A stretch of DNA of 64,000 bases from Obrimoposthia wandeli (GCA_977020255.1 CDROCS010001089.1:310001-374000), one strand, 5' to 3'; shown: positions 1-10,309, counted from the first letter of the stretch. Notes: generated by a model from the letters alone, not told the origin. A program made the numbers and translations.

Positions 1-689
1 GAGACGAAATCAAAGCTATTTGCAAGCAGTTGATTGAAGTATGTGGCCTAGATAATGCGCTATTTCGTTTGTACGCATCACGCGGCCCAGGTGGTTTCAC
101 GCCAAATCCTTATGTTTCAATCGGTCCACAGTTGTACTTAATCGTTTCAACATTAAGCAACCCTGCTGCAACCCTTTATGATGATGGCGCTAAAATTGGT
201 TTCAGCCAAGTAGCGGTTAAAAGTGGCGGCATGGCGAAAACCAAATCATGTAATTACTTATCCAATGTACTGATGAGCAAAGAAGCGGTTGATAGCAAAC
301 TTAACTTTGTAATCAATGTAACTGAAGATGGTGATCTTGGTGAAGGCCCGACTGAAAACATCGCGTACTTAACACCTGAAAATGATTTGATCTTCTCAAG
401 TTTCGATCACACCTTAAGAGGCACTACGCTGTTAAGGCTACAAGAATTATCGCAGAAAATGGTTGAACAAGGCCTTATTCGCGAAATGAAAGAAGCGAAA
501 CAACAAGCTGATGGTCTAATGAACGCTAAAGAAATATTCATGGTTGGCACCACGCTAGATGCACTACCTGTAGTAGAAGTTGCAGGTAAGATGGTAGGTG
601 ACGGTAAGCCAGGCCCTGTTGCAAAAGCAGCACGTGCATTGCTTATTGAAGATCAGTTGACTAAAGGTACTGTGTTAGCTAACTGTTAA
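1..689 (+). CDS. PLP-dependent aminotransferase class IV (D-amino acid/branched-chain aminotransferase-like), 5'-truncated by window edge
   Basis: Frame is open from position 3 (DEIKAICKQL...). Motifs KSCNYLSNVL (PLP lysine), EGPTENI, LRGTT and final GKPGPV are typical of fold-type IV aminotransferases. Confidence 0.85.
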   Translation, partial: DEIKAICKQLIEVCGLDNALFRLYASRGPGGFTPNPYVSIGPQLYLIVSTLSNPAATLYDDGAKIGFSQVAVKSGGMAKTKSCNYLSNVLMSKEAVDSKLNFVINVTEDGDLGEGPTENIAYLTPENDLIFSSFDHTLRGTTLLRLQELSQKMVEQGLIREMKEAKQQADGLMNAKEIFMVGTTLDALPVVEVAGKMVGDGKPGPVAKAARALLIEDQLTKGTVLANC

Positions 690-713
690 TAGCTACTGCT
701 GATATGCGCACAG

Positions 714-756
714 CAAGATCAATTTAATCTAATAGATGAAATTGATCTTGTTTTGT
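714..756. terminator. Hairpin between convergent genes, probable intrinsic terminator
   Basis: CAAGATCAATTT (714-725) / AAATTGATCTTG (739-750) perfect inverted repeat followed by TTTTGT. Confidence 0.6.
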
Positions 757-804
757 AACGCTCAGCGTTTTGCAATTTTCACAGCTTTTAATATTTTTAC
801 AACA

Positions 805-1524
805 TTAAGCGATTTTACGTTCTACTGTCGCAGCTACCATTCTTGTCAAACTAGTTAAGTCGTACACTGGTAAGTTAAAACGCTGCTGCACTTGTGGTGC
901 GAAGTGTGATAAATCAGTACATTCTAAAATGATAGAACCTAGATCAGGATTTTCACTGATCAAATTCTCGATCACTGTGAATAATTCATTGCGAAAAATA
1001 TCTACATCAAAATCATTGTGCTTAGCATCCAATATTACGTCTGCAAACTGTGGCTGATGCTGCATACCGGCTAGTGCGATAGGGATGTTCTGTGCACCCA
1101 CGGCTGCAAGATGATCTTCAGAAAGCGCATCACTATTAGCCACAACCACGCCCACTTTACGATGACGCCCAAGGCTGTTATAAACCATAGGGATTTGTAT
1201 CAAGCTTGAAATAAATACCGGAATATCAACAGCATCTGCTATTTCTCGCTGAAATAAAGCTAAGAAACCACAGCTGGCTGTAATCGCTTTAACCCCTTCG
1301 CGTTCGAGTTCTTGTGCCGCTTCAATAAAAGGCTGCAATAACGCAGGATCTCGCTGACCGATTAAACGGGCAATCGTGGCACCCTTTACTGTTTTGTACA
1401 ATACTGGAAAATCAAAACCGGCTGGGTGCTTAATGTGACCAAGCGGCTTTGGAAAATAAGATTCTAAGCAAATAACCCCAATTGGGATGCTGTAATAGTT
1501 AAAACCGCCTTTTAAAATTGTCAT
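805..1524 (-). CDS. Asp/Glu/hydantoin racemase family protein
   Basis: 239 aa; two-cysteine motifs ITASCGF and ILECTDL; AAGGA ribosome-binding site upstream of ATG. Confidence 0.75.
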   Translation of the reverse strand: MTILKGGFNYYSIPIGVICLESYFPKPLGHIKHPAGFDFPVLYKTVKGATIARLIGQRDPALLQPFIEAAQELEREGVKAITASCGFLALFQREIADAVDIPVFISSLIQIPMVYNSLGRHRKVGVVVANSDALSEDHLAAVGAQNIPIALAGMQHQPQFADVILDAKHNDFDVDIFRNELFTVIENLISENPDLGSIILECTDLSHFAPQVQQRFNLPVYDLTSLTRMVAATVERKIA

Positions 1525-1597
1525 ACTTATCCTTTGTGTAATGATCTATAAATAATTCTTGTCTATGATTCTAATTCTAATTAACTAGCTCTAACTC

Positions 1598-2872
1598 TTA
1601 GTTAAAACGCTCTGCGCTAAAAGCGCTGATATCCACTGCTGGCGTCTTACCTGTCACTAAATCAGTAACTACTTGGCCAGTCACTGATGCTAGCGTTAAG
1701 CCTAAATGGCCATGCCCAAAAGCTAAGGTAACATTCGGTTTCGCTTTCATTTTAGCAATCACCGGTAATGAGTCAGGTGTGGTTGGACGACTTCCTACCC
1801 AGCTTGATTCAACACTTACATCATCACCAAGCATGGCTTTAGCATGGCCTAGCATTACTGCTTTGCGCCGTTCGCTTGGAGCGCTATCAAGATGTGTATA
1901 TTCAGCAGTACCTGCTACTCTAATGCCTGATTGCATCGGTGTCATATGCACCCCTTGGTTCATCCACGCTATTGGTCGCGTTAGCTGGTTGTCACCCGCT
2001 TTTAACATCAAGTGGTAACCTCGCTCGCACACTTGTGGAATCTCCAGTTGTAGCTGGGAAACCAGCTGCTTAGTGGCTGCACCTGTTGCGACGACTAATT
2101 GATCAAAGGTGTGCGTCGCCCCTGCACTGTGTAGTGTCACTTGCTCAGCCGTTTGTGTAATCTGCGCTACTTTGTGCTGTAAAAAGACTCCACCATTTTC
2201 AATAAAATGCGAGAAAATAGATTGGCAATACGCAGAAGGATCAATGGTGTGACGAGTATTCGGATAATAAACGGCACCTGCACAATCGAGCTTAAGTTGT
2301 GGCTCAAGTTCTTTAATTTGCCCAGCATTTAGTAACTCTAGCGCTACGCCTTGTGCCTCGCGCTCTTTAAAGCTTGGCTTAGCGCTTTCAAAACTAGCAG
2401 CGTTTGAAAACATACCCATAAAGCCTTGCTGGATAATTAAATTCTGGCTATTGGTGGCTTCTATAACCGCCTTGTCTGCTTCGTGGGCAAGGCTATGTAA
2501 GTTTAATAAGCCCTGCTTACCCGCTTCATAACGCGATTTGCGGCAGGCTTTAAAGTATTGCATGCCATAGCGCAATAATTGTGGTGTGTAGCTTGGGTCT
2601 ATCGCTAAAGGACTTTGTCTATCTAGCAACATTTTTGGTATTTTGCGCAGCATCGCGTAATTAGCAAATGGTAATCTGCCGTAATCTGCAAATAATCCGG
2701 CATTACCAAAAGACGCACCTAAGCCTGGCTTTTCGGTATCGATTAAGGTGACAGTCACGCCTGCGCGCTGCAGCCAAAAAGCACAGTTTAGCCCGACGAT
2801 GCCCGCGCCAAGTATCGCTACACTTAATGCAGGTGCTGCCTGAGAGTGATTATCTACCGAATCCTGTTTCAT
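1598..2872 (-). CDS. FAD-dependent D-amino acid dehydrogenase/oxidase (DadA family)
   Basis: GAGIVG Rossmann motif, SFGNAG, ERGYHL, GSRPTTPDSLPVI, GHGHLGLT. Confidence 0.85.
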   Translation of the reverse strand: MKQDSVDNHSQAAPALSVAILGAGIVGLNCAFWLQRAGVTVTLIDTEKPGLGASFGNAGLFADYGRLPFANYAMLRKIPKMLLDRQSPLAIDPSYTPQLLRYGMQYFKACRKSRYEAGKQGLLNLHSLAHEADKAVIEATNSQNLIIQQGFMGMFSNAASFESAKPSFKEREAQGVALELLNAGQIKELEPQLKLDCAGAVYYPNTRHTIDPSAYCQSIFSHFIENGGVFLQHKVAQITQTAEQVTLHSAGATHTFDQLVVATGAATKQLVSQLQLEIPQVCERGYHLMLKAGDNQLTRPIAWMNQGVHMTPMQSGIRVAGTAEYTHLDSAPSERRKAVMLGHAKAMLGDDVSVESSWVGSRPTTPDSLPVIAKMKAKPNVTLAFGHGHLGLTLASVTGQVVTDLVTGKTPAVDISAFSAERFN

Positions 2873-2876
2873 GCAA

Positions 2877-3239
2877 TCAGTGTCCTTTTGCTGAAGGTTC
2901 GGCAGCAGTTACTTGTATTTCGACAGCCAACTCAACTCTAGCCAAACGCGCTTCTACACAAGCGCGCACTGGTGGATTTTCAACATCTACCCAGCTATCC
3001 CATATTTCATTCATTAGTGCGAATTGGCGAATATCGCTCAACCAAATATTGGCACTAAGCACATCGCTCTTCTCGCAACCGGCTTGCGCTAGCAGATCAT
3101 CAATTTGTTGTAGTATTTGGCGTGTCTGGCCCTGTACATCTTCGCTAGCATCTTTGGCAACTTGGCCACAAAGCAATACTGTGCCGTTATAACTGACTAT
3201 TTGGCTCATACGTGGAGTTTTGTTTAATCTATTTATCAT
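2877..3239 (-). CDS. RidA/YjgF/UK114 family imine/enamine deaminase (YoaB-like)
   Basis: RMSQIVSYNGTVLLCGQV, NEIWDSW, PVRACVEARL (catalytic Arg present), VEIQVTAA. The second ATG (3239) fits family length better than 3263. Confidence 0.88.
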   Translation of the reverse strand: MINRLNKTPRMSQIVSYNGTVLLCGQVAKDASEDVQGQTRQILQQIDDLLAQAGCEKSDVLSANIWLSDIRQFALMNEIWDSWVDVENPPVRACVEARLARVELAVEIQVTAAEPSAKGH

Positions 3240-3327
3240 GTCGTTTTGCTCTCGGTTTATCATTCGTTTTGGCTGTGAAGCTCACTTCATTAAAATCACT
3301 AGCTATATATAAAATTACTACTTAGTA

Positions 3328-3342
3328 TTATGAACTTCATAA
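3328..3342. promoter_or_regulatory. Putative LysR operator (T-N11-A palindrome)
   Basis: TTATGAA-C-TTCATAA perfect inverted repeat in the divergent ridA/lysR spacer. Confidence 0.55.
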
Positions 3343-4310
3343 ATTTTAATTATATTTTATTACAAGCATTCAGGAGCAGCACGCTTATCAACCTTCGACA
3401 AATGGAAGCTTTTCGCGCCGTCATACTCTCTGGCTCTGTCTCACAAGCGGCAAAGCAACTTTATAAAAGCCAGCCTGCTGTGAGTATGCTAATCAATCAG
3501 TTAGAAGAAAATGTTGGATTCCAACTGTTTGAGCGCCGAAAAAAAAGGCTCTACCCAACGCCTGAAGCGCACTACTTATATAACGAAGTAGAATCTATTT
3601 TCAGCCGTATTCAAGATGTTTCTCAAACCGTTAAAGATATTAAAAACAAACAGTTTGGCTTTTTGCGTATTGGTTGTATGCCCGGGCCGTCTAACTTTTT
3701 CATGCCCGATTTAGTCGCTGATTTTCTGGAAAAACATCCTAAAGTTCAGATATCGATGCAAACGCGCACCTCTGATGGCGTCAAAGAATGGATTGCTTCT
3801 AGCCAGTACGACATTGGTTTAGCAGAGATTTCTTCTCAAGAAAACAGCTTTGAGAGCGAATCCTTTGAACTCGATTGCCTGTGTGCAATTCCAGCGTCCC
3901 ATCCTTTAGCAAACGAAACGGTGATCACTCCACAATTATTAGATAATCAACCGATGATCACTTTGCATCCAGATCACATGACCTTTCATGATTTACAAAA
4001 GGCTTTTTCCAAGCATAAAAGTCGTCTTAACGTGCGTTTACAAACACGTTTCTTTATCCCTGCGCTGCGTTTTGTGGAGCGTGATTTGGGCTTTTGTGTC
4101 ATGGATCCAATTTCTATTGCGAGTTACTGCAGCTACAGCCAGCCGGGGAAAATTGTCTTTCGAAAATTCACCCCTAACATCGCTCTAAAAGTGAATATTT
4201 TGTATCCAGCTGATACACCAAGATCGCGTATCACTTTAGCCTTTGCTCAACAAGTACGTGAAAAACTCACTTCATTGATCGAACACCCTGACCAATTTAC
4301 TCAGTGGTAA
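3330..4310 (+). CDS. LysR family transcriptional regulator (true start uncertain, about 3381-3402)
   Basis: NLRQMEAFRAVILSGSVSQAAKQLYKSQPAVS HTH, LFER motif, LRIG substrate-binding domain; divergent from ridA. Confidence 0.9.
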   Translation: MNFINFNYILLQAFRSSTLINLRQMEAFRAVILSGSVSQAAKQLYKSQPAVSMLINQLEENVGFQLFERRKKRLYPTPEAHYLYNEVESIFSRIQDVSQTVKDIKNKQFGFLRIGCMPGPSNFFMPDLVADFLEKHPKVQISMQTRTSDGVKEWIASSQYDIGLAEISSQENSFESESFELDCLCAIPASHPLANETVITPQLLDNQPMITLHPDHMTFHDLQKAFSKHKSRLNVRLQTRFFIPALRFVERDLGFCVMDPISIASYCSYSQPGKIVFRKFTPNIALKVNILYPADTPRSRITLAFAQQVREKLTSLIEHPDQFTQW

Positions 4311-4318
4311 ACAACCAG

Positions 4319-4476
4319 GAGGCTGCCCGAGAACAGACTGATCTACTGCGATCTAGTCTATTTGGCCAAATTTAACGTTCATTTTCGTTATGTAGAACAA
4401 CTATTCGCCTCAAATGAACCCTAAATTTGACTAAAATAACCTAACTCTCGCAACATCGCAGTTCTCGGACAGCCTC
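4319..4476. mobile_element. Putative MITE (non-autonomous IS derivative), 158 bp
   Basis: Terminal inverted repeats GAGGCTGCCCGAGAAC / GTTCTCGGACAGCCTC (1 mismatch in 16), flanked by CCAG and CTAG; no coding capacity. Confidence 0.55.
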
Positions 4477-4480
4477 CTAG

Positions 4481-4501
4481 CCTTGTGCTAATAGCACAAG
4501 G
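4481..4501. terminator. Hairpin between convergent lysR and tctC
   Basis: CCTTGTGCTA-A-TAGCACAAGG perfect inverted repeat. Confidence 0.5.
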
Positions 4502-4530
4502 CAGCTGTCGAATACCTAAGCTTTGATTTC

Positions 4531-5493
4531 TTACTTCTTAACTTTTGCTGCTGCTTCTTTCATGATTTGTGAAGTTTCAGTCATGTCTGCAATCCACTTT
4601 TCGCCATTTCTAAAGTCAACAATAGCGCCCATGTTCGCGTACGCTTTTAAAACTTTAGGATCTTTCATCGCTTTAGTTGTTGCAGCGATTAGCTTGTCTA
4701 CAACTTCCTGTGGAACGCCTTTTGGTGCAAAAATACCAGACCAACCTTCAAAGCTGCCTTTAATGCCAAACTCTGCGAATGTTGGTACGCCTGGGTATAG
4801 ATCCATTTTCTGGTTCATTACCAATACACGTGCACGATCCGCTTTTACATGAGGACCAAATGCAGGTGGGAATGACACGGCCGAATCTATATGTCCGCCA
4901 ATAACTGAAACCATTGATTCAGCTGTGGTATTACCGTGTACATACTTAGGTGTGTAACCCGCTTGATCAGCGATGATGTTCGCTAAAATAGTTCCTGAAG
5001 ATGCCGCGCCCCAAGACCCTTGTGTCAATCTATTTGCCTTTGCACCAGCAATGAACTCTGGGAATGTTTTATAAGGGCTGTCTTTAGCAACAACTACGCC
5101 TAAAGGCACTGCAGTCATTTTAAGAATTGGCGTAAAGCTGTTAAAGCTGTATGGCGTTTTACTAAAATTAGGTGTTACTAACATGTTGCCTAAACCAGCA
5201 TTGATCAGGGTGTAGCCATCTTTCTTTGAATTGGCAACAAAAGAAGTACCAACGATACCGCCCGCACCTTTTTTGTTTATAACGATTACCGGTACGCCCA
5301 GTTCTTTCTCAACGGCATCAGCCCAAACACGCGTTGTTAAATCTGAATCACCACCAGCTCCATAAGGAACGATGATTTTGATAGGCTTTTCAGGATATCC
5401 TGCAACCGCTGCGCTTGACGCTAAGCAGATGCCAATGGCCGAGATTAATGTCGTTACTTTAGTATTAAATAGTTTCATTTGGTAATGCCTCAT
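4531..5493 (-). CDS. tctC: Tripartite tricarboxylate transporter substrate-binding protein (TctC/Bug family)
   Basis: Signal peptide, YPEKPIKIIVPYGAGGDSD, NKKGAGGIVG, DGYTL, GWSGIFAPKGVP. Confidence 0.9.
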   Translation of the reverse strand: MRHYQMKLFNTKVTTLISAIGICLASSAAVAGYPEKPIKIIVPYGAGGDSDLTTRVWADAVEKELGVPVIVINKKGAGGIVGTSFVANSKKDGYTLINAGLGNMLVTPNFSKTPYSFNSFTPILKMTAVPLGVVVAKDSPYKTFPEFIAGAKANRLTQGSWGAASSGTILANIIADQAGYTPKYVHGNTTAESMVSVIGGHIDSAVSFPPAFGPHVKADRARVLVMNQKMDLYPGVPTFAEFGIKGSFEGWSGIFAPKGVPQEVVDKLIAATTKAMKDPKVLKAYANMGAIVDFRNGEKWIADMTETSQIMKEAAAKVKK

Positions 5494-5576
5494 TGTTGTT
5501 ATTAATTACAGGTTTTGTACTGTTTAATTGTCGATCTTTTAAATTACTTTCATTTGCGAGTACCTTTACTGAGTAC

Positions 5577-7070
5577 TCACTGTTTTGCATGTTTACGCTT
5601 CAAGTGCACACTAGAGCCTACAAAGAAGGCGGCTAGCGCGATAAAGACCCAAGCAAAAGGAGAGGCAACAAATAGGTAATAATCGTCACCTACAATCGCT
5701 AACGCTTGATCTAAGTTTTGTTCTAAGAAAGGCGTTAAGATAAAGCCAATAATAAATACCGCAGGGTTTAAGCCAATTAAACGCATGGCATAACCGATAA
5801 TAGTGAAGACGATTAAAATAAGTACGTCGTCCATGTTCTGTGCTGAAGTGAAAGCACCTGCAAAGGCAAATACGGTGACACATGGGAATATAAAGTAGCG
5901 CTTAAGCGAGGCCACTTTAGTGAAGAACCTAAAGCCCGAACGCGCAATTACTAACAAGAATAAATCGGTGAGCAAAAAGCCTGCAAAAATGGCATAAATA
6001 GTTTCTGTGTGCTCAAAGAAGATCATTGGCCCGGGAGTTAAACCGTGAATTAAGAAAGCGCCCATTAACAGTGCAGCAACATCATCACCTGGAATACTTA
6101 GTGTCAACATAGGTATCAAGCTTGAACCACACACTGCATTGTTAGCAGATTCTGCGGCTGCAATTCCCTCAACAGAACCTTTACCAAATTTTTCAGGCTC
6201 TTTTGAGGTGCGTTTTGCTTCCCCGTACGCTATGAAAGCTGCGGTACTAGAACCCAGCCCCGGAAGTGCGCCGATAAAAGTACCTATGCCAGTGGATTTC
6301 AAAATAGTACCGAATAAGCTGCGATACTCTTTCCAACTAATTCTGTTATCGTCTTTATTGGCTGATTTTGTCAGCGATATTTCGTGTTCGGGCAAATGCC
6401 TTCGCCTAATCACATTGATGATTTCTGGCATCACTAAGATACCGATTAATAAGGGAATAAAGGTGAATCCAGCCATGAGCTCAGTCACACCAAAGGTGAA
6501 GCGTGATGCACCGGTAATGGAAGATAAACCGACCATTGCAAAGATCATCCCCAAGCAGCAAGAGAGCAAGCCGCGCGAGATAGATTCACCTGCTAATGAG
6601 CCAATAACCGTGAAAGCAAAGAGCAGCAAAAATACTTTTTCAATAGGCCCTGCTTGCAGGGAAATGACTGATATAGGCGCCGCGATAAAGATCAACACAA
6701 TTGTCGCTAACGCTTCACCCGTTACGGATGAGAACAGTGATATATCTAACGCTTTACCGGCCTTACCCATTTTAGTTAGCGCGTGGCCATCTTGCGCGGT
6801 TAAAAAAGAAGCGGCGGCGCCGGGTGTATTTATCAGTATTGCCGAAATAGACCCGCCATATATACTGGCCTTATAAACGGCTAGCAGCATGGTAATGCCA
6901 ATAATTGGATCTACATAAAAAGTTAGCGGCAAAATAATTGAAATGGCCATAATCCCTGATATGCCAGGAATAGCGCCAAAGATAATACCGACCAAAACGC
7001 CTGCTATAATCCCTAGAATAGGGCCTACTGCGAGAATTGAGGCAAAACCATTTATAATATTGTCAAACAT
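5577..7070 (-). CDS. tctA: Tripartite tricarboxylate transporter permease (TctA family)
   Basis: 497 aa polytopic; GAIPGISG, YGGSISAILINTPG, GALPGLG, AAESANNA, LSIPGD repeats. Confidence 0.92.
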   Translation of the reverse strand: MFDNIINGFASILAVGPILGIIAGVLVGIIFGAIPGISGIMAISIILPLTFYVDPIIGITMLLAVYKASIYGGSISAILINTPGAAASFLTAQDGHALTKMGKAGKALDISLFSSVTGEALATIVLIFIAAPISVISLQAGPIEKVFLLLFAFTVIGSLAGESISRGLLSCCLGMIFAMVGLSSITGASRFTFGVTELMAGFTFIPLLIGILVMPEIINVIRRRHLPEHEISLTKSANKDDNRISWKEYRSLFGTILKSTGIGTFIGALPGLGSSTAAFIAYGEAKRTSKEPEKFGKGSVEGIAAAESANNAVCGSSLIPMLTLSIPGDDVAALLMGAFLIHGLTPGPMIFFEHTETIYAIFAGFLLTDLFLLVIARSGFRFFTKVASLKRYFIFPCVTVFAFAGAFTSAQNMDDVLILIVFTIIGYAMRLIGLNPAVFIIGFILTPFLEQNLDQALAIVGDDYYLFVASPFAWVFIALAAFFVGSSVHLKRKHAKQ

Positions 7071-7124
7071 ATGGATCCTTACTTAAGACAGTTATTAGTT
7101 ATTTTTAGTGATGCTTAATTTGTT

Positions 7125-7592
7125 TTAAGATAAAGACCAAGTGGGTAAATAGACTCGTAAAAAATGGATCGATCCATAGAAAACCATCGCAGGCACCACT
7201 ATCGATACCGTTGTCATAGCGACCCAACGACGCCCACCTAGCAACACTGCCACTGCCATCATTACAAACGGTGTTACCAGCAAGAAACCAACTAAAGGCA
7301 CTAAAAACCAGTAGCCAATGAAAATGGCAACATACAAGTTCACACCCCAAAAACCGCTTAAACTAATCCCTTCGTTTGCCGCCATAGGCTCTTTTTGCAG
7401 TAATTTCGAAACTGAGCTACCACCGATAAATAAAGCGAACGCAATAATAAAACAGGCAACAATACGCGGTAGAAATAATGATCCAAGATCTGTTTCAGCG
7501 CCGCCTTGGGTTAAATTGTCGTTTGTTAAGATAATGATTGAGGCGATGATTAGAATCGTCATCACCACGATATCTACTTTTCTTCTATCCAT
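7125..7592 (-). CDS. tctB: Tripartite tricarboxylate transporter small subunit (TctB family)
   Basis: 155 aa with about 4 TM helices, FLPR motif, C-terminal LRVYLP, directly upstream of tctA. Confidence 0.85.
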   Translation of the reverse strand: MDRRKVDIVVMTILIIASIIILTNDNLTQGGAETDLGSLFLPRIVACFIIAFALFIGGSSVSKLLQKEPMAANEGISLSGFWGVNLYVAIFIGYWFLVPLVGFLLVTPFVMMAVAVLLGGRRWVAMTTVSIVVPAMVFYGSIHFLRVYLPTWSLS

Positions 7593-7668
7593 AAGGCTCT
7601 CCTAAATTTATTATTATAGCCTTGTAAAGGGCCTGCGAAATTATACGCAGTGAGTCTGGTATATATTC

Positions 7669-7841
7669 ACTAAAACTCATTGCTGTCCGGTTAAAAAATG
7701 TAAGCCCTCTAACTCATTGATTTGTGGCTTTCTATCATTGATAAATAGATATTTTTTAGCTAAAGCGTATTCGCTGCTAACGTAAAATCAATGAGTTAGA
7801 GAGCAACAAAAGTTAAACCGGACACTAATGACTAAAACTCA
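7669..7841. repeat. 48-bp imperfect inverted repeat bracketed by an 11-bp direct repeat; contains two IHF-consensus sites
   Basis: Arms 7676-7723 and 7785-7832; ACTAAAACTCA at 7669-7679 and 7831-7841; WATCAANNNNTTR matches at 7710-7722 (minus) and 7786-7798 (plus). Confidence 0.6.
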
Positions 7842-8584
7842 GTGATAACGGTGCTTTTTAATTTAAAAAAGTGATGTTCGCCCAATAACGGTAATTTATA
7901 TTTTTATGTTAAGGGCTGTTACATTTCATGCATTAATCCAATTTTTTTAAACTGAATTTAGATTCAATATATTCTGTGAAAAACATAATTACAAATAGCA
8001 TTTTTTTAACATATCATCATTTTTTCTTATGAACTTATTTTTATAGTGTGCAATTAATGAGTTAACACACAAAGCAAAGCAAACTGAGTAGACGGTTGTT
8101 GGTAGCTGCTTGCTTAAGTGATGCTGATCAGTGCTGAATGTCAAAAAGCGAGAATAGAGTATTTGCCTTAAAAAAAAGAGTAGACCTAAACATAAAATGA
8201 GACAGAAAAATAAGGAAAGGTTTTAATAATAAGGAGGTGCAATAAAATAAAGAAAGAATTAAACAAAAGAGTAGTGAGTAAATAGACTAAGAGAAGCGCA
8301 CTTCCATGTGCTGATTTGCTAACGTTAAGTACTAGCGATTTGGATAACGCATAACCCTACCCTATGTAGGAAATGTATTACGCTGCCATCGGTTAGCAAA
8401 AACTTCCTCAGCAAGTATAAATGAATGTGCAATTATGACGAAATCAAAATTTATAATTTAACATCATAAAACTCCACACATCAGTATACATCAGGCCTCG
8501 CTGGGTTTTATTTTTTGTAAAGCGGGCCATTAATTATGCAGAAACGGCTATTTTTTATACTAAACTTAGCCAAGGCTATTAATC

Positions 8585-9298
8585 TCAGCCAACCAGCATC
8601 GAACCTAACATTCCCAACACAAAACCTAATATAGCGCCCATTGGCGGCAACCAGTGTTTTTCTAAACTAACTTTAGGCGCTATATCTTGAAAAATTGAAT
8701 ACAAAATTCCTCCTGCTGCGAACAACATAAGGGCTGAAATACCACCTGTCGCATCCGCTAAATAAACAAGACCGATTACGGCAGCGATAGGTCCCATAAA
8801 AGCCATTGCAAAGAATAACAGAATTATTTTTTTAGTTTGATAGTGACCACTACTACGTAACTCTCGGTAGGCGTTAAACCCTTCTGGGATGTTTTGTAAG
8901 CCAATTAACAGCGCCAATAACAACGCGCTTTCCCGGTGCAAAATAAACGTTGCTCCAAGAGCAATCGACTCAGGTATAAAATCTGTCAGCATTGCCGCCA
9001 ATTGGCTTGCAGGTGTGTTTAGCTTAAATAGCAGGATATCTAGTGCCATAAAGCCAAAGCCACCAGCAATAAAATAGGCACTTGCCCATAGCGGATCAAG
9101 ATTAGCAATTCCATGTGGCACCAATACTAATGCCACCGCAGAGAGTAAAGCGCCCCCACCAAACGCCATAACACCATGGCGAAACTCTTGCTCTAGCCAA
9201 TCAGCACGAATATGTTCAAACCTGGCTATGAGTGCTCCTATTGGCATCGCCACTCCAGCTAAAAAAGAGAGCAAAGTTACGGTTAACATAGCCGTCAT
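8585..9298 (-). CDS. ZIP (ZupT-like) family divalent metal transporter
   Basis: Hydrophobic 237 aa; FGGGALL, DFIPESIALG, GLQNIPEG, FAAGGILY motifs of ZIP transporters. Confidence 0.75.
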   Translation of the reverse strand: MTAMLTVTLLSFLAGVAMPIGALIARFEHIRADWLEQEFRHGVMAFGGGALLSAVALVLVPHGIANLDPLWASAYFIAGGFGFMALDILLFKLNTPASQLAAMLTDFIPESIALGATFILHRESALLLALLIGLQNIPEGFNAYRELRSSGHYQTKKIILLFFAMAFMGPIAAVIGLVYLADATGGISALMLFAAGGILYSIFQDIAPKVSLEKHWLPPMGAILGFVLGMLGSMLVG

Positions 9299-9505
9299 AT
9301 TCGTTTATCCGATAATGCCTGTTCCTGCGAATAAGCTTGAATAGTTGCTAGGAAAAATACCTGCAAGAAGCTAAAACGGCCCTTCTTACTTATATAGTTG
9401 GATAAAAAGTCTTCAAGAAAATAATATTTTAATGACATACACACTCAATTTTGTTATTTAAGTAATTGCTATAAAATTTTAATACTATGGGGAAGCATAC
9501 CGCTA

Positions 9506-10309
9506 TTGTCATCTATCATTAGTAATGAAGCAATTATTCGCATCTGCATTTTCGGGGCGTTTATCTTATTATTTTTTAGCTGGGAAAGGTTAGCTCCTTG
9601 GCGTGTAGTCTCTGAAAACATGCTGCAACGCAGGTTCACCAATATCAGTTTAATGCTTATCAGCACATTTTTTATGCGCTTACTATGGCCTGCACTTACT
9701 ATCTCCACTGCATATTGGGCCCAATCTCAACAAATAGGCCTCTCATACTTCATCAACTTACCTATATTTATCAGCGCTATTGGCTGCTTTATCTTATTCG
9801 ACCTGTTCATTTATCTGCAACATATGCTGCTGCATTTAGTGCCCTTTTTTTGGCGCTTCCATCGAGTGCACCATTTTGATACCCACTTAGATGTCACTTC
9901 AGGTGTACGCTTTCATCCTATTGAGGCGGTTTTTTCACTATTGCTAAAAGCGCTTATTATTTTAGTGTTAGGTGCGCCGGTCATCACCGTGATTTTATTT
10001 GAAATCACCCTCAACGCGTTGTCTCTTTTTAATCATGCCAATATTAAAATACCGCTTAAGCTAGAGTACTATTTACGTTTTTTATTGGTAACTCCCAGTG
10101 TCCACCGCGTTCATCACAGTGTTGAAATAGTAGAGCACTCTCATAATTTTGGTTTTAACTTCTTAATTTGGGACAAGTTATTTAATACTTATTTAGCACC
10201 CTCTAACGATACTAATAAAAGTTTGGTATTTGGTCAAAAAGATTTATCTAACGGGCCAAGCCCCGCTTCGCTATACCAAATGCTGAAACATCCATTCAAC
10301 AAAAGCTAG
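9506..10309 (+). CDS. Sterol desaturase/fatty acid hydroxylase family membrane protein
   Basis: His boxes YLQHMLLH, FHRVHH, FNHAN, HRVHH and NFGFNFLIWDKLFNT. Confidence 0.85.
   Translation: MSSIISNEAIIRICIFGAFILLFFSWERLAPWRVVSENMLQRRFTNISLMLISTFFMRLLWPALTISTAYWAQSQQIGLSYFINLPIFISAIGCFILFDLFIYLQHMLLHLVPFFWRFHRVHHFDTHLDVTSGVRFHPIEAVFSLLLKALIILVLGAPVITVILFEITLNALSLFNHANIKIPLKLEYYLRFLLVTPSVHRVHHSVEIVEHSHNFGFNFLIWDKLFNTYLAPSNDTNKSLVFGQKDLSNGPSPASLYQMLKHPFNKS

Follow-up and report, generated by a model that had tools for sequence, protein, structure and literature searches.

Background

The use of D-Glu and D-Gln by Pseudomonas aeruginosa relies on dguRABC, a locus that encodes a LysR regulator, a flavin adenine dinucleotide (FAD)-dependent D-amino-acid dehydrogenase, a Rid2 protein and a binding protein of the ATP-binding cassette (ABC) type, and that includes no racemase. 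Alanine catabolism in Pseudomonas involves dadRAX together with the Rid protein DadY; DadX is an alanine racemase dependent on pyridoxal phosphate (PLP), and DadR is an Lrp-type regulator. Here we describe a locus in a 64,000-nucleotide stretch of DNA from the Obrimoposthia wandeli assembly (GCA_977020255.1 CDROCS010001089.1:310001-374000, G000:C1089:310001-374000 in our numbering; hereafter, the window), which is part of a 752-kb contig of bacterial gene content. This locus is a conserved module of seven genes: lysR, tctB-tctA-tctC for a tripartite tricarboxylate transporter (TTT), and ridA-dao-racemase for a Rid protein, a DadA-like flavoenzyme and a two-cysteine protein of the PRK07475 family. 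The module is real, conserved and undescribed, and two of its parts, the TTT importer and the PRK07475 two-cysteine racemase, are new compared with known designs. No description of the gene combination, or of a TTT with D-aspartate, was found in the searchable open literature.

In gene composition, the closest likeness is to dguRABC, where a LysR regulator, an FAD flavoenzyme, a Rid2 protein and a binding-protein-dependent importer are likewise encoded in one locus. The dgu importer is, however, of the ABC type and has no racemase alongside, whereas the window encodes a TTT and a PRK07475 racemase, and the dehydrogenases of the two systems are likened by gene composition only. The module also shares with dadRAX/DadY the logic of a racemase, a D-specific flavoenzyme and a Rid protein, but its racemase is a PLP-independent two-cysteine protein, its regulator is of the LysR type, and its flavoenzyme scores below the DadA cut-off. 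A further tie to the dgu system is the Rid2 protein PA5083 (PMC5619798), which is among the best solved relatives of the Rid protein of the window. The dbuABC genes of P. putida (PMC12724383) similarly combine an oxidase, a Rid2 protein and a transporter. In the CuyB-CuyA pathway of cysteate degradation (PMC11193023), a D-specific enzyme receives its substrate from a two-cysteine PF01177 racemase, and the cluster also encodes RidA and a transporter; yet CuyB belongs to another subfamily, and its D-specific partner is a PLP sulfo-lyase rather than a flavoenzyme. A sequence-only reading made before this analysis could not match the gene set to a named pathway; the set is indeed absent from the searchable literature, although its design follows known D-amino-acid modules.

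Conservation of the gene module

Thirteen orthologues of the racemase were aligned, the alignment was used to fetch 80 loci (one genome per species), and the window proteins were scored against every open reading frame (ORF) of these loci. Racemases of at least 63% identity (clade A) form a single clade of 49 rows, with a support of 100 in a quick maximum-likelihood tree; the counts below come from the 37 clade-A loci with at least 7 kb of upstream sequence. The flavoenzyme gene is next to the racemase gene in 36 of these, TctA and TctC accompany the racemase in 34, and a Rid gene is found at the racemase in 33. The co-occurrence of racemase, DadA-like, Rid and Tct genes that the sequence-only reading had proposed to look for is thus borne out, the complete set of six partners being present in 31 of the 37 loci. 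In the same number of genomes, the flavoenzyme and Rid2 genes are adjacent and accompanied by a transporter and a dedicated regulator, the hallmark of dgu-, dad- and dbu-type modules. The partner orthologues at the clusters are 71-99% (TctA), 70-99% (TctC) and 58-98% (LysR) identical to the window proteins, and TctB orthologues are found at the cluster in 36 clade-A loci.

The carriers span gamma- and betaproteobacteria, and the genes occur in three arrangements. In the lineage of the window, tctBAC is followed by lysR on the other strand and by ridA-dao-rac. In most Oceanospirillaceae, tctBAC-lysR is divergent from ridA-dao-rac. In Azoarcus, Thauera and one unclassified metagenome-assembled genome (MAG) (L050, L051, L053), lysR is followed by a co-directional tctBAC-ridA-dao-rac run. 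Because the same orthologous genes stay together in ~45 genomes, the grouping is far beyond chance. No extra catabolic gene is conserved at the clade-A clusters.

The racemase and its relationship to Alma1

The racemase passes the cut-off of the PRK07475 model NF005679 (260.5 bits, cut-off 231) and that of PF01177 (46 bits, cut-off 31). The two-cysteine fold proposed by the sequence-only reading is supported by C85 (in SCGF) and C202 (in ECTD), which are invariant among the 13 orthologues (63-85% identity), and by an AlphaFold2 model (pLDDT 82) with the two domains of a racemase fold. In Foldseek, this model matches aspartate, glutamate, hydantoin and allantoin racemases and arylmalonate decarboxylase (AMDase), at TM scores of 0.55-0.67 and identities of 13-19%, with a probability of 1.00 for 1jfl, 2eq5, 3s81 and 5lg5. 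No solved structure close to the racemase by sequence was found, and the matches in the ESM Atlas are generic racemase clusters only. Three more specific identities were rejected: CuyB, because the score for its model is far below the cut-off (NF052483, 34.3 bits, cut-off 190); MurI, proper genes for which are found on other contigs; and AMDase, unlike which the protein has both cysteines.

The one study found to mention PRK07475 (PMC10349084) ranks it nearest, among bacterial subfamilies, to the algal dimethylsulfoniopropionate (DMSP) lyase Alma1, and describes its bacterial members as lacking DMSP lyase activity. Our search of the literature found no described function for a bacterial PRK07475 member. 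The two groups belong to the same superfamily, and the motifs around both cysteines are near-identical, DCGF/NCGF and ECTE/ECTQ in Alma proteins (PMC10349084) as against SCGF and ECTD here, so that the Alma1-type cysteine motifs themselves are not matched. Alma proteins are, furthermore, eukaryotic and cleave DMSP, whereas the context here is a flavoenzyme, a Rid2 protein and importers of amino-acid types. This gene context points to amino-acid racemisation as the likely role.

The flavoenzyme and the Rid protein

The flavoenzyme contains an FAD-binding DAO domain (PF01266, 207 bits) with an N-terminal dinucleotide-binding GAGIVG (GxGxxG) motif. Because its full-length match to the DadA model NF001933 stays below the cut-off (220.5 compared with 383 bits), it appears to be DadA-like at most and no DadA orthologue. 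Its best solved match is 6j38, labelled "glycine oxidase", and no other member of the module evolves as fast.

The Rid protein falls below the cut-off of the archetypal RidA model TIGR00004 (60.8 bits, cut-off 106). Among solved structures, it is best matched by NMB1025, PSPTO_0102 and PA5083, and it is nearer to the Rid2 members PSPTO_0102 (7e-25) and PA5083 (5e-24) than to TdcF (1.5e-9) and YjgF (3e-7). The catalytic arginine, which the sequence-only reading had named for imine-hydrolysing RidA proteins in general, is retained in the alignment with solved Rid2 proteins, where PVRACVEARLA of the window corresponds to PARACVEARLA of NMB1025 and PARATVEAKL of PSPTO_0102; retention of this arginine is a criterion taken from PMC4433059. 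PSPTO_0102 and PA5083 are Rid2 proteins that deaminate the imino acids released by L-amino-acid oxidase and D-arginine dehydrogenase (PMC5619798), and, more generally, Rid2 proteins hydrolyse imino acids from amino-acid oxidases and DauA (PMC4433059, PMC5619798). The Rid protein of the module is, accordingly, a predicted imine deaminase of the Rid2 subfamily.

The importer and its exchange in relatives

The genes for TctA, TctB and TctC are contiguous and their products exceed the cut-offs of PF01970, PF07331 and PF03401, respectively, so that the gene set of a TTT system is complete. TctC has a signal-like N-terminal segment and the family motif P-[FY]-x-A-G-G-x-x-D in the form PYGAGGDSD, with Y for F; the signature P-F-x-A-G-G-x-x-D forms a carboxylate pincer (PMC5812351). 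The closest solved relatives of TctC are 4x9t, to which no ligand has been assigned, BugE (2dvz) and BugD (2f5x), and the pincer motif is common to TctC and the Bordetella receptors BugD and BugE, all members of one family. Since the structures of BugD and BugE contain aspartate and glutamate, respectively (PMC5812351), the view of the sequence-only reading that TTT systems are mostly known for carboxylates and not for amino acids was too strong. The matches of TctC to BugD and BugE are, however, only in the range of 1e-33 to 1e-36, and contacts to the distal portion of the ligand involve residues that vary within the TctC family (PMC5812351); therefore, no ligand can be read from this relationship.

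More information comes from relatives in which the importer differs. Within clade A, a TAXI-TRAP system takes the place of the TTT in Endozoicomonas, Marinobacterium profundum and a Chromatiales MAG (L043, L047 and L036), and stands beside the TTT in two Amphritea genomes (L031, L032). At 48-57% identity of the racemase, alphaproteobacteria and Arenicellales combine a TAXI-TRAP system with the flavoenzyme and the racemase, and other relatives in this range combine a polar-amino-acid ABC system with the racemase, the flavoenzyme and a Rid protein. Distant members on plasmids are accompanied by four-gene amino-acid ABC systems, an FAD oxidoreductase and a LysR regulator; a further match is on pSymA, in a record without annotation. 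Because the enzyme pair is constant while the importer is exchanged, the theme of the family appears to be a racemase that feeds a stereospecific flavin-dependent amine or amino-acid dehydrogenase after the binding-protein-dependent uptake of an amino-acid-like solute. Characterised TAXI proteins bind glutamate, and the contact residues are known for VcGluP (PMC11574862). In clade A, the TAXI binding protein has the glutamate binders 1us4 and 8s4j as its nearest relatives, and keeps 7 of the 10 mapped VcGluP contacts (S40, Y45, S75, E125, G156, Y200, G203).

Proposed pathway and substrate

What we observe directly are the families of the genes, the key residues, the fold and the conservation of the linkage; from these, we infer the activities, stereochemistry, co-regulation and substrate that follow. 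The module is likely to be a substrate-inducible unit that breaks down a polar, and most likely acidic, alpha-amino acid. TctC would bind the solute in the periplasm via its carboxylate, and TctAB would import it. The PRK07475 enzyme would then convert the L and D forms into each other at the alpha-carbon by means of its two cysteines, the DadA-like flavoenzyme would oxidise one enantiomer, presumably D, to the 2-imino acid, and the Rid2 protein would hydrolyse the latter to the 2-oxo acid and ammonium; the LysR regulator would turn the genes on. The conserved genes include no others for catabolism, so that the end product is probably one of the central 2-oxo acids, for example, oxaloacetate or 2-oxoglutarate. 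The sequence-only reading had already suggested a route of uptake, racemisation, oxidation and deamination, and the linkage of the genes (TTT in 34 of 37 loci, co-directional in Azoarcus and Thauera) supports it, but the aminotransferase that it included falls outside the module.

The best-fitting substrate is a primary alpha-amino acid of the Asp/Glu type, acidic or otherwise polar. The acidic or polar character is favoured because the importer classes overlap in their ligands (aspartate and glutamate for BugD and BugE, glutamate for TAXI proteins, polar amino acids for the ABC systems) and because the clade-A TAXI protein keeps most of the VcGluP contacts. A primary alpha-amino acid is favoured because the conserved Rid2 protein implies a free 2-imino acid, and is preferred to an N-substituted one because this conservation is combined with a DadA-like enzyme of a single subunit. 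The lack of other conserved catabolic genes at the cluster also speaks for an acidic or polar primary amino acid, being what a product like oxaloacetate or 2-oxoglutarate would lead one to expect. Cysteate and opines are weaker candidates than amino acids of the Asp/Glu type.

Several points weigh against this assignment. The superfamily of the racemase also includes isomerases, decarboxylases and the lyase Alma1. The flavoenzyme falls short of the DadA cut-off and evolves fast, with 45-52% identity where the racemase has ~68% and TctA ~83%. Import of the D enantiomer would make the racemase dispensable for the oxidation, and the order of the steps is therefore uncertain. In the clade-A TAXI variant, an Ile replaces Gln93, which VcGluP needs for binding; the ligand of this variant is therefore expected to be glutamate-like rather than L-glutamate itself, and is probably not plain L-glutamate. 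No operator common to the upstream regions of ridA and tctB was found, and none of the sequencing runs that match the locus is an RNA run.

Alternative explanations

The alternative that survives best, although we regard it as unlikely, is that the substrate is a sulfonated or sulfur amino acid, such as cysteate or cysteine sulfinate, with the racemase replacing CuyB and the flavoenzyme yielding 3-sulfopyruvate. A TTT system for sulfolactate is known (PMC5812351), as is a two-cysteine cysteate racemase that acts together with RidA (PMC11193023). Among the relatives, a plasmid of Ruegeria sp. SCSIO 43209 (NZ_CP065362, 101590-109231; L093, also L084 and L077) places the racemase and an FAD oxidoreductase with sulfur-type genes and RidA, in a co-directional operon with a divergent LysR gene: two TAXI-TRAP genes, the FAD oxidoreductase, the PRK07475 racemase, a TSUP/TauE exporter, a CuyA-like enzyme and RidA. 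The TAXI binding protein of this operon is 53-60% identical to those of clade A, and its D-cysteine-desulfhydrase/CuyA-like enzyme scores 343 bits relative to the 450-bit CuyA cut-off; the operon may represent an alternative pathway for cysteate or another sulfur amino acid, with a PRK07475 racemase in the place of CuyB. Sulfur-amino-acid genes are also close by in Leisingera aquaemixtae (plasmid NZ_CP081034, L094), where a TAXI-TRAP system, an FAD oxidoreductase and the racemase are followed by a class V aminotransferase, and the upstream genes encode a thiamine pyrophosphate-binding enzyme and a cystathionine gamma-lyase. The Ruegeria oxidase is, however, only ~30% identical to the flavoenzyme of the window, the racemase itself is far from the CuyB model (34 against 190 bits), and the clade-A clusters share no conserved gene for desulfonation or sulfite export. 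In the five clade-A genomes searched, CuyA exceeds the cut-off in one, the beta subunit of sulfopyruvate decarboxylase in none and Xsc in four. Because most of the carriers searched lack CuyA together with sulfopyruvate decarboxylase, cysteate does not appear well supported as the clade-A substrate. In the complete genome of Amphritea sp. HPY, the Xsc gene (994 bits; G002:C1:2509503-2511245) lies ~18 kb from the module.

Also unlikely, and next in order, is an N-substituted amino dicarboxylate. This could be an acidic amino acid with an N-methyl group or an opine (strombine or alanopine, for example); the flavoenzyme would then cleave a secondary amine, and the "racemase" would epimerise one of the centres. 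A racemase relative (35% identity) on plasmid pAt of Agrobacterium tumefaciens (NZ_CP042276, 342782-347711; L095) is found beside FAD, 2Fe-2S and FAD oxidoreductase genes. This set seems to us akin to the heteromeric dehydrogenases of opines or hydroxyproline, and genes for RidA and a protein with an aspartate-dehydrogenase domain accompany it. Among solved structures, the flavoenzyme best matches 6j38, which acts on an N-carboxymethyl amine, and many carriers come from sediment or marine invertebrate habitats. The module, by contrast, encodes a single DadA-like subunit with no Fe-S partner, and the importers in relatives are of amino-acid types. Most known TTT ligands bear two acid groups (PMC5812351), but the conserved Rid2 protein with its arginine points to free 2-imino acids (PMC5619798). 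The opine reading draws mostly on the preference of TTT systems for dicarboxylates and on the gene context in Agrobacterium.

It is still less probable that the PRK07475 protein is a lyase, isomerase or decarboxylase, similar to Alma1, maleate isomerase or AMDase, that acts on a carboxylate, with the flavoenzyme and Rid2 processing its product. All three kinds of enzymes occur within the same superfamily, AMDase-type genes have been seen beside TTT genes (PMC5812351), and Alma1 takes the same alpha-proton to drive a beta-elimination (PMC5395565), which, on an amino acid, would give 2-aminoacrylate, a classic Rid substrate (PMC4433059). However, both cysteines are present in the window protein, whereas the first position is Gly in AMDase (the Foldseek match 3ixm is a G74C mutant of AMDase), and the lack of DMSP lyase activity described for bacterial PRK07475 (PMC10349084) also argues against such a role. 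Moreover, the pairing with a stereospecific flavoenzyme recurs in distant relatives, as expected of a racemase that feeds a flavoenzyme.

Finally, the genes could be mere neighbours, with a TTT for an unrelated carboxylate and enzymes for internally made D-amino acids, but, even though tctBAC and ridA-dao-rac are separate transcription units here with lysR between them on the other strand, this is highly improbable given that, in 34 of 37 genomes and in both gamma- and betaproteobacteria, the TTT orthologues have remained beside the enzyme genes despite three rearrangements.

Implications

A possible D/L-amino-acid route in many marine Oceanospirillales and some betaproteobacteria bears on how D-amino acids are turned over in seawater and in habitats associated with animals. 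PRK07475, the widespread bacterial family nearest to the algal enzyme that produces dimethyl sulfide, gains a functional context that can be tested, and, if the ligand is confirmed, TTT importers, very few of which have assigned ligands, would be extended to dedicated amino-acid catabolism. As a tentative conjecture, the bacterial PRK07475 enzymes might serve as catabolic racemases, or else as beta-eliminating lyases, of a polar or sulfur/sulfonate amino acid that is abundant in the sea, and the module an undescribed marine D/L-amino-acid pathway with a TTT importer. If so, naming the substrate would show the ancestral activity from which the algal DMSP lyase Alma1 arose. Several carriers, among them Neptunomonas japonica DSM 18939, Marinobacterium jannaschii DSM 6295, Amphritea balenae and Neptuniibacter caesariensis MED92, are in culture, so that the proposal is directly testable.

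Layout of the locus

ORF calls and profile searches in the window confirmed the position and family of all eight genes that the sequence-only reading had listed (Table 1). Its description of ridA, the dadA-like gene and the racemase gene as co-oriented, closely spaced and divergent from the LysR gene also holds: all three are on the minus strand, with gaps of 4 nt (ridA-dao) and 73 nt (dao-rac). The tctBAC genes converge with the 3' end of lysR, away from the promoter of the enzyme operon.

Table 1. Genes and control region of the locus, in window coordinates
Feature	Position	Strand	Evidence and remarks
Class IV aminotransferase, 3' part	1..689	+	PF01063; 322 aa in full, start 279 nt before the window
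Two-Cys racemase/epimerase, PLP-independent, PRK07475 (predicted)	805..1524	-	PF01177 5e-12; 239 aa; last gene of ridA-dao-rac
DadA-like FAD-dependent amino-acid dehydrogenase/oxidase (dao; predicted)	1598..2872	-	PF01266 7e-61; 424 aa
Rid2-subfamily imine deaminase (ridA; predicted)	2877..3263	-	PF01042 1e-26; first gene of ridA-dao-rac
Divergent ridA/lysR control region	3264..3329	.	Gene coordinates
LysR-type regulator	3330..4310	+	PF00126 and PF03466
TctC periplasmic solute-binding protein	4531..5493	-	PF03401 9e-47
TctA large membrane subunit	5577..7070	-	PF01970 8e-135
TctB small membrane subunit	7125..7592	-	PF07331 4e-11; first gene of tctBAC

Comparison with the start positions of orthologues makes a ridA start at M9 (window position 3239) more likely, and suggests that the true lysR start lies ~18-25 codons downstream of the listed ATG. 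With both starts corrected, the ridA/lysR control region would probably span ~140-160 nt. A promoter scan detected a sigma-70-like site facing lysR at 3269-3296; overall, promoter-like sites are scarcer than in shuffled sequences, and terminator-like sites are within ~1 standard deviation of the shuffle mean. Comparison of the ridA and tctB upstream regions gave a single 12/14 match, and the ridA-lysR region contains no dyad T-N11-A box. The convergent ends of lysR and tctC flank an 18-nt inverted repeat (4317-4334 and 4461-4478; its arms are 126 nt apart and 94% complementary), and a 47-nt imperfect inverted repeat (7677-7723 and 7785-7831) lies in the tctB leader. An Rfam search of positions 1-9500, which include both repeats, gave no match. 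Upstream of tctB, a 990-nt AT-rich gap (7593-8584, ~33-36% GC) contains no ORF of 80 aa or longer and is followed by genes for a ZIP-family transporter (8585-9298) and an OlsE-like fatty-acid hydroxylase (9506-10309).

Neighbouring genes and source assembly

The class IV aminotransferase, which the sequence-only reading had made part of the route, is convergent with the racemase and, therefore, belongs to a separate transcription unit. It adjoins the racemase only in the three strains of the assembly (88-99% identical copies) and in the MAG with a 96% identical racemase (L009). Relatives with 88% and 85% identical racemases, like all others, lack it within a distance of ~9 kb from the racemase; this distribution and the convergent orientation exclude it as a pathway member. 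It scores below every NCBIfam cut-off, for models of branched-chain aminotransferase (BCAT), D-amino-acid aminotransferase (D-AAT) and aminodeoxychorismate (ADC) lyase alike. For D-AAT, it reaches 89 of 277 bits with TIGR01121 and 100 of 320 bits with PRK06680, and the BCAT models score slightly higher, still under their own cut-offs. In 22 clade-A loci (e.g., L013:1932-2816), a gene for a RarD/EamA-family transporter is found ~1 kb downstream of the racemase; common in Oceanospirillaceae, this gene is absent in the window, where the aminotransferase takes its place.

The assembly comprises 1.35 Gb in 6,912 contigs and is a mixture of many bacteria: because genes that pass the MurI cut-off (at least 13) or the DadA cut-off (several) are spread over different contigs, and because the module itself is present in three strain-level copies (C1089, C6248, C5463), it must derive from multiple organisms. 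In the sister strain (97% identical) represented by C6248, tctC is divided between two ORFs that cover residues 1-170 and 194-320 (L005:1736-2694), which reflects either a disrupted gene or an assembly error. By racemase identity, the closest public relatives are Oceanospirillaceae MAGs (96% and 88%) and "Gammaproteobacteria bacterium AS21" (85%). Sampled words of the stretch are found in sequencing runs of the source sample; elsewhere, only small shares of these words occur, in ice and seawater metagenomes. At least three more PRK07475 paralogues are found on other contigs of the assembly, and the paralogous racemases offer no hint to the substrate at this locus, their gene contexts being different. 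The contig of the window itself carries a second PRK07475 paralogue, 38% identical (G000:C1089:619990-620658; L089:7955-8695, minus strand), which adjoins a 3-hydroxyisobutyrate-dehydrogenase-like gene and an aldehyde dehydrogenase gene and might epimerise a 2-methyl-3-substituted propionate.

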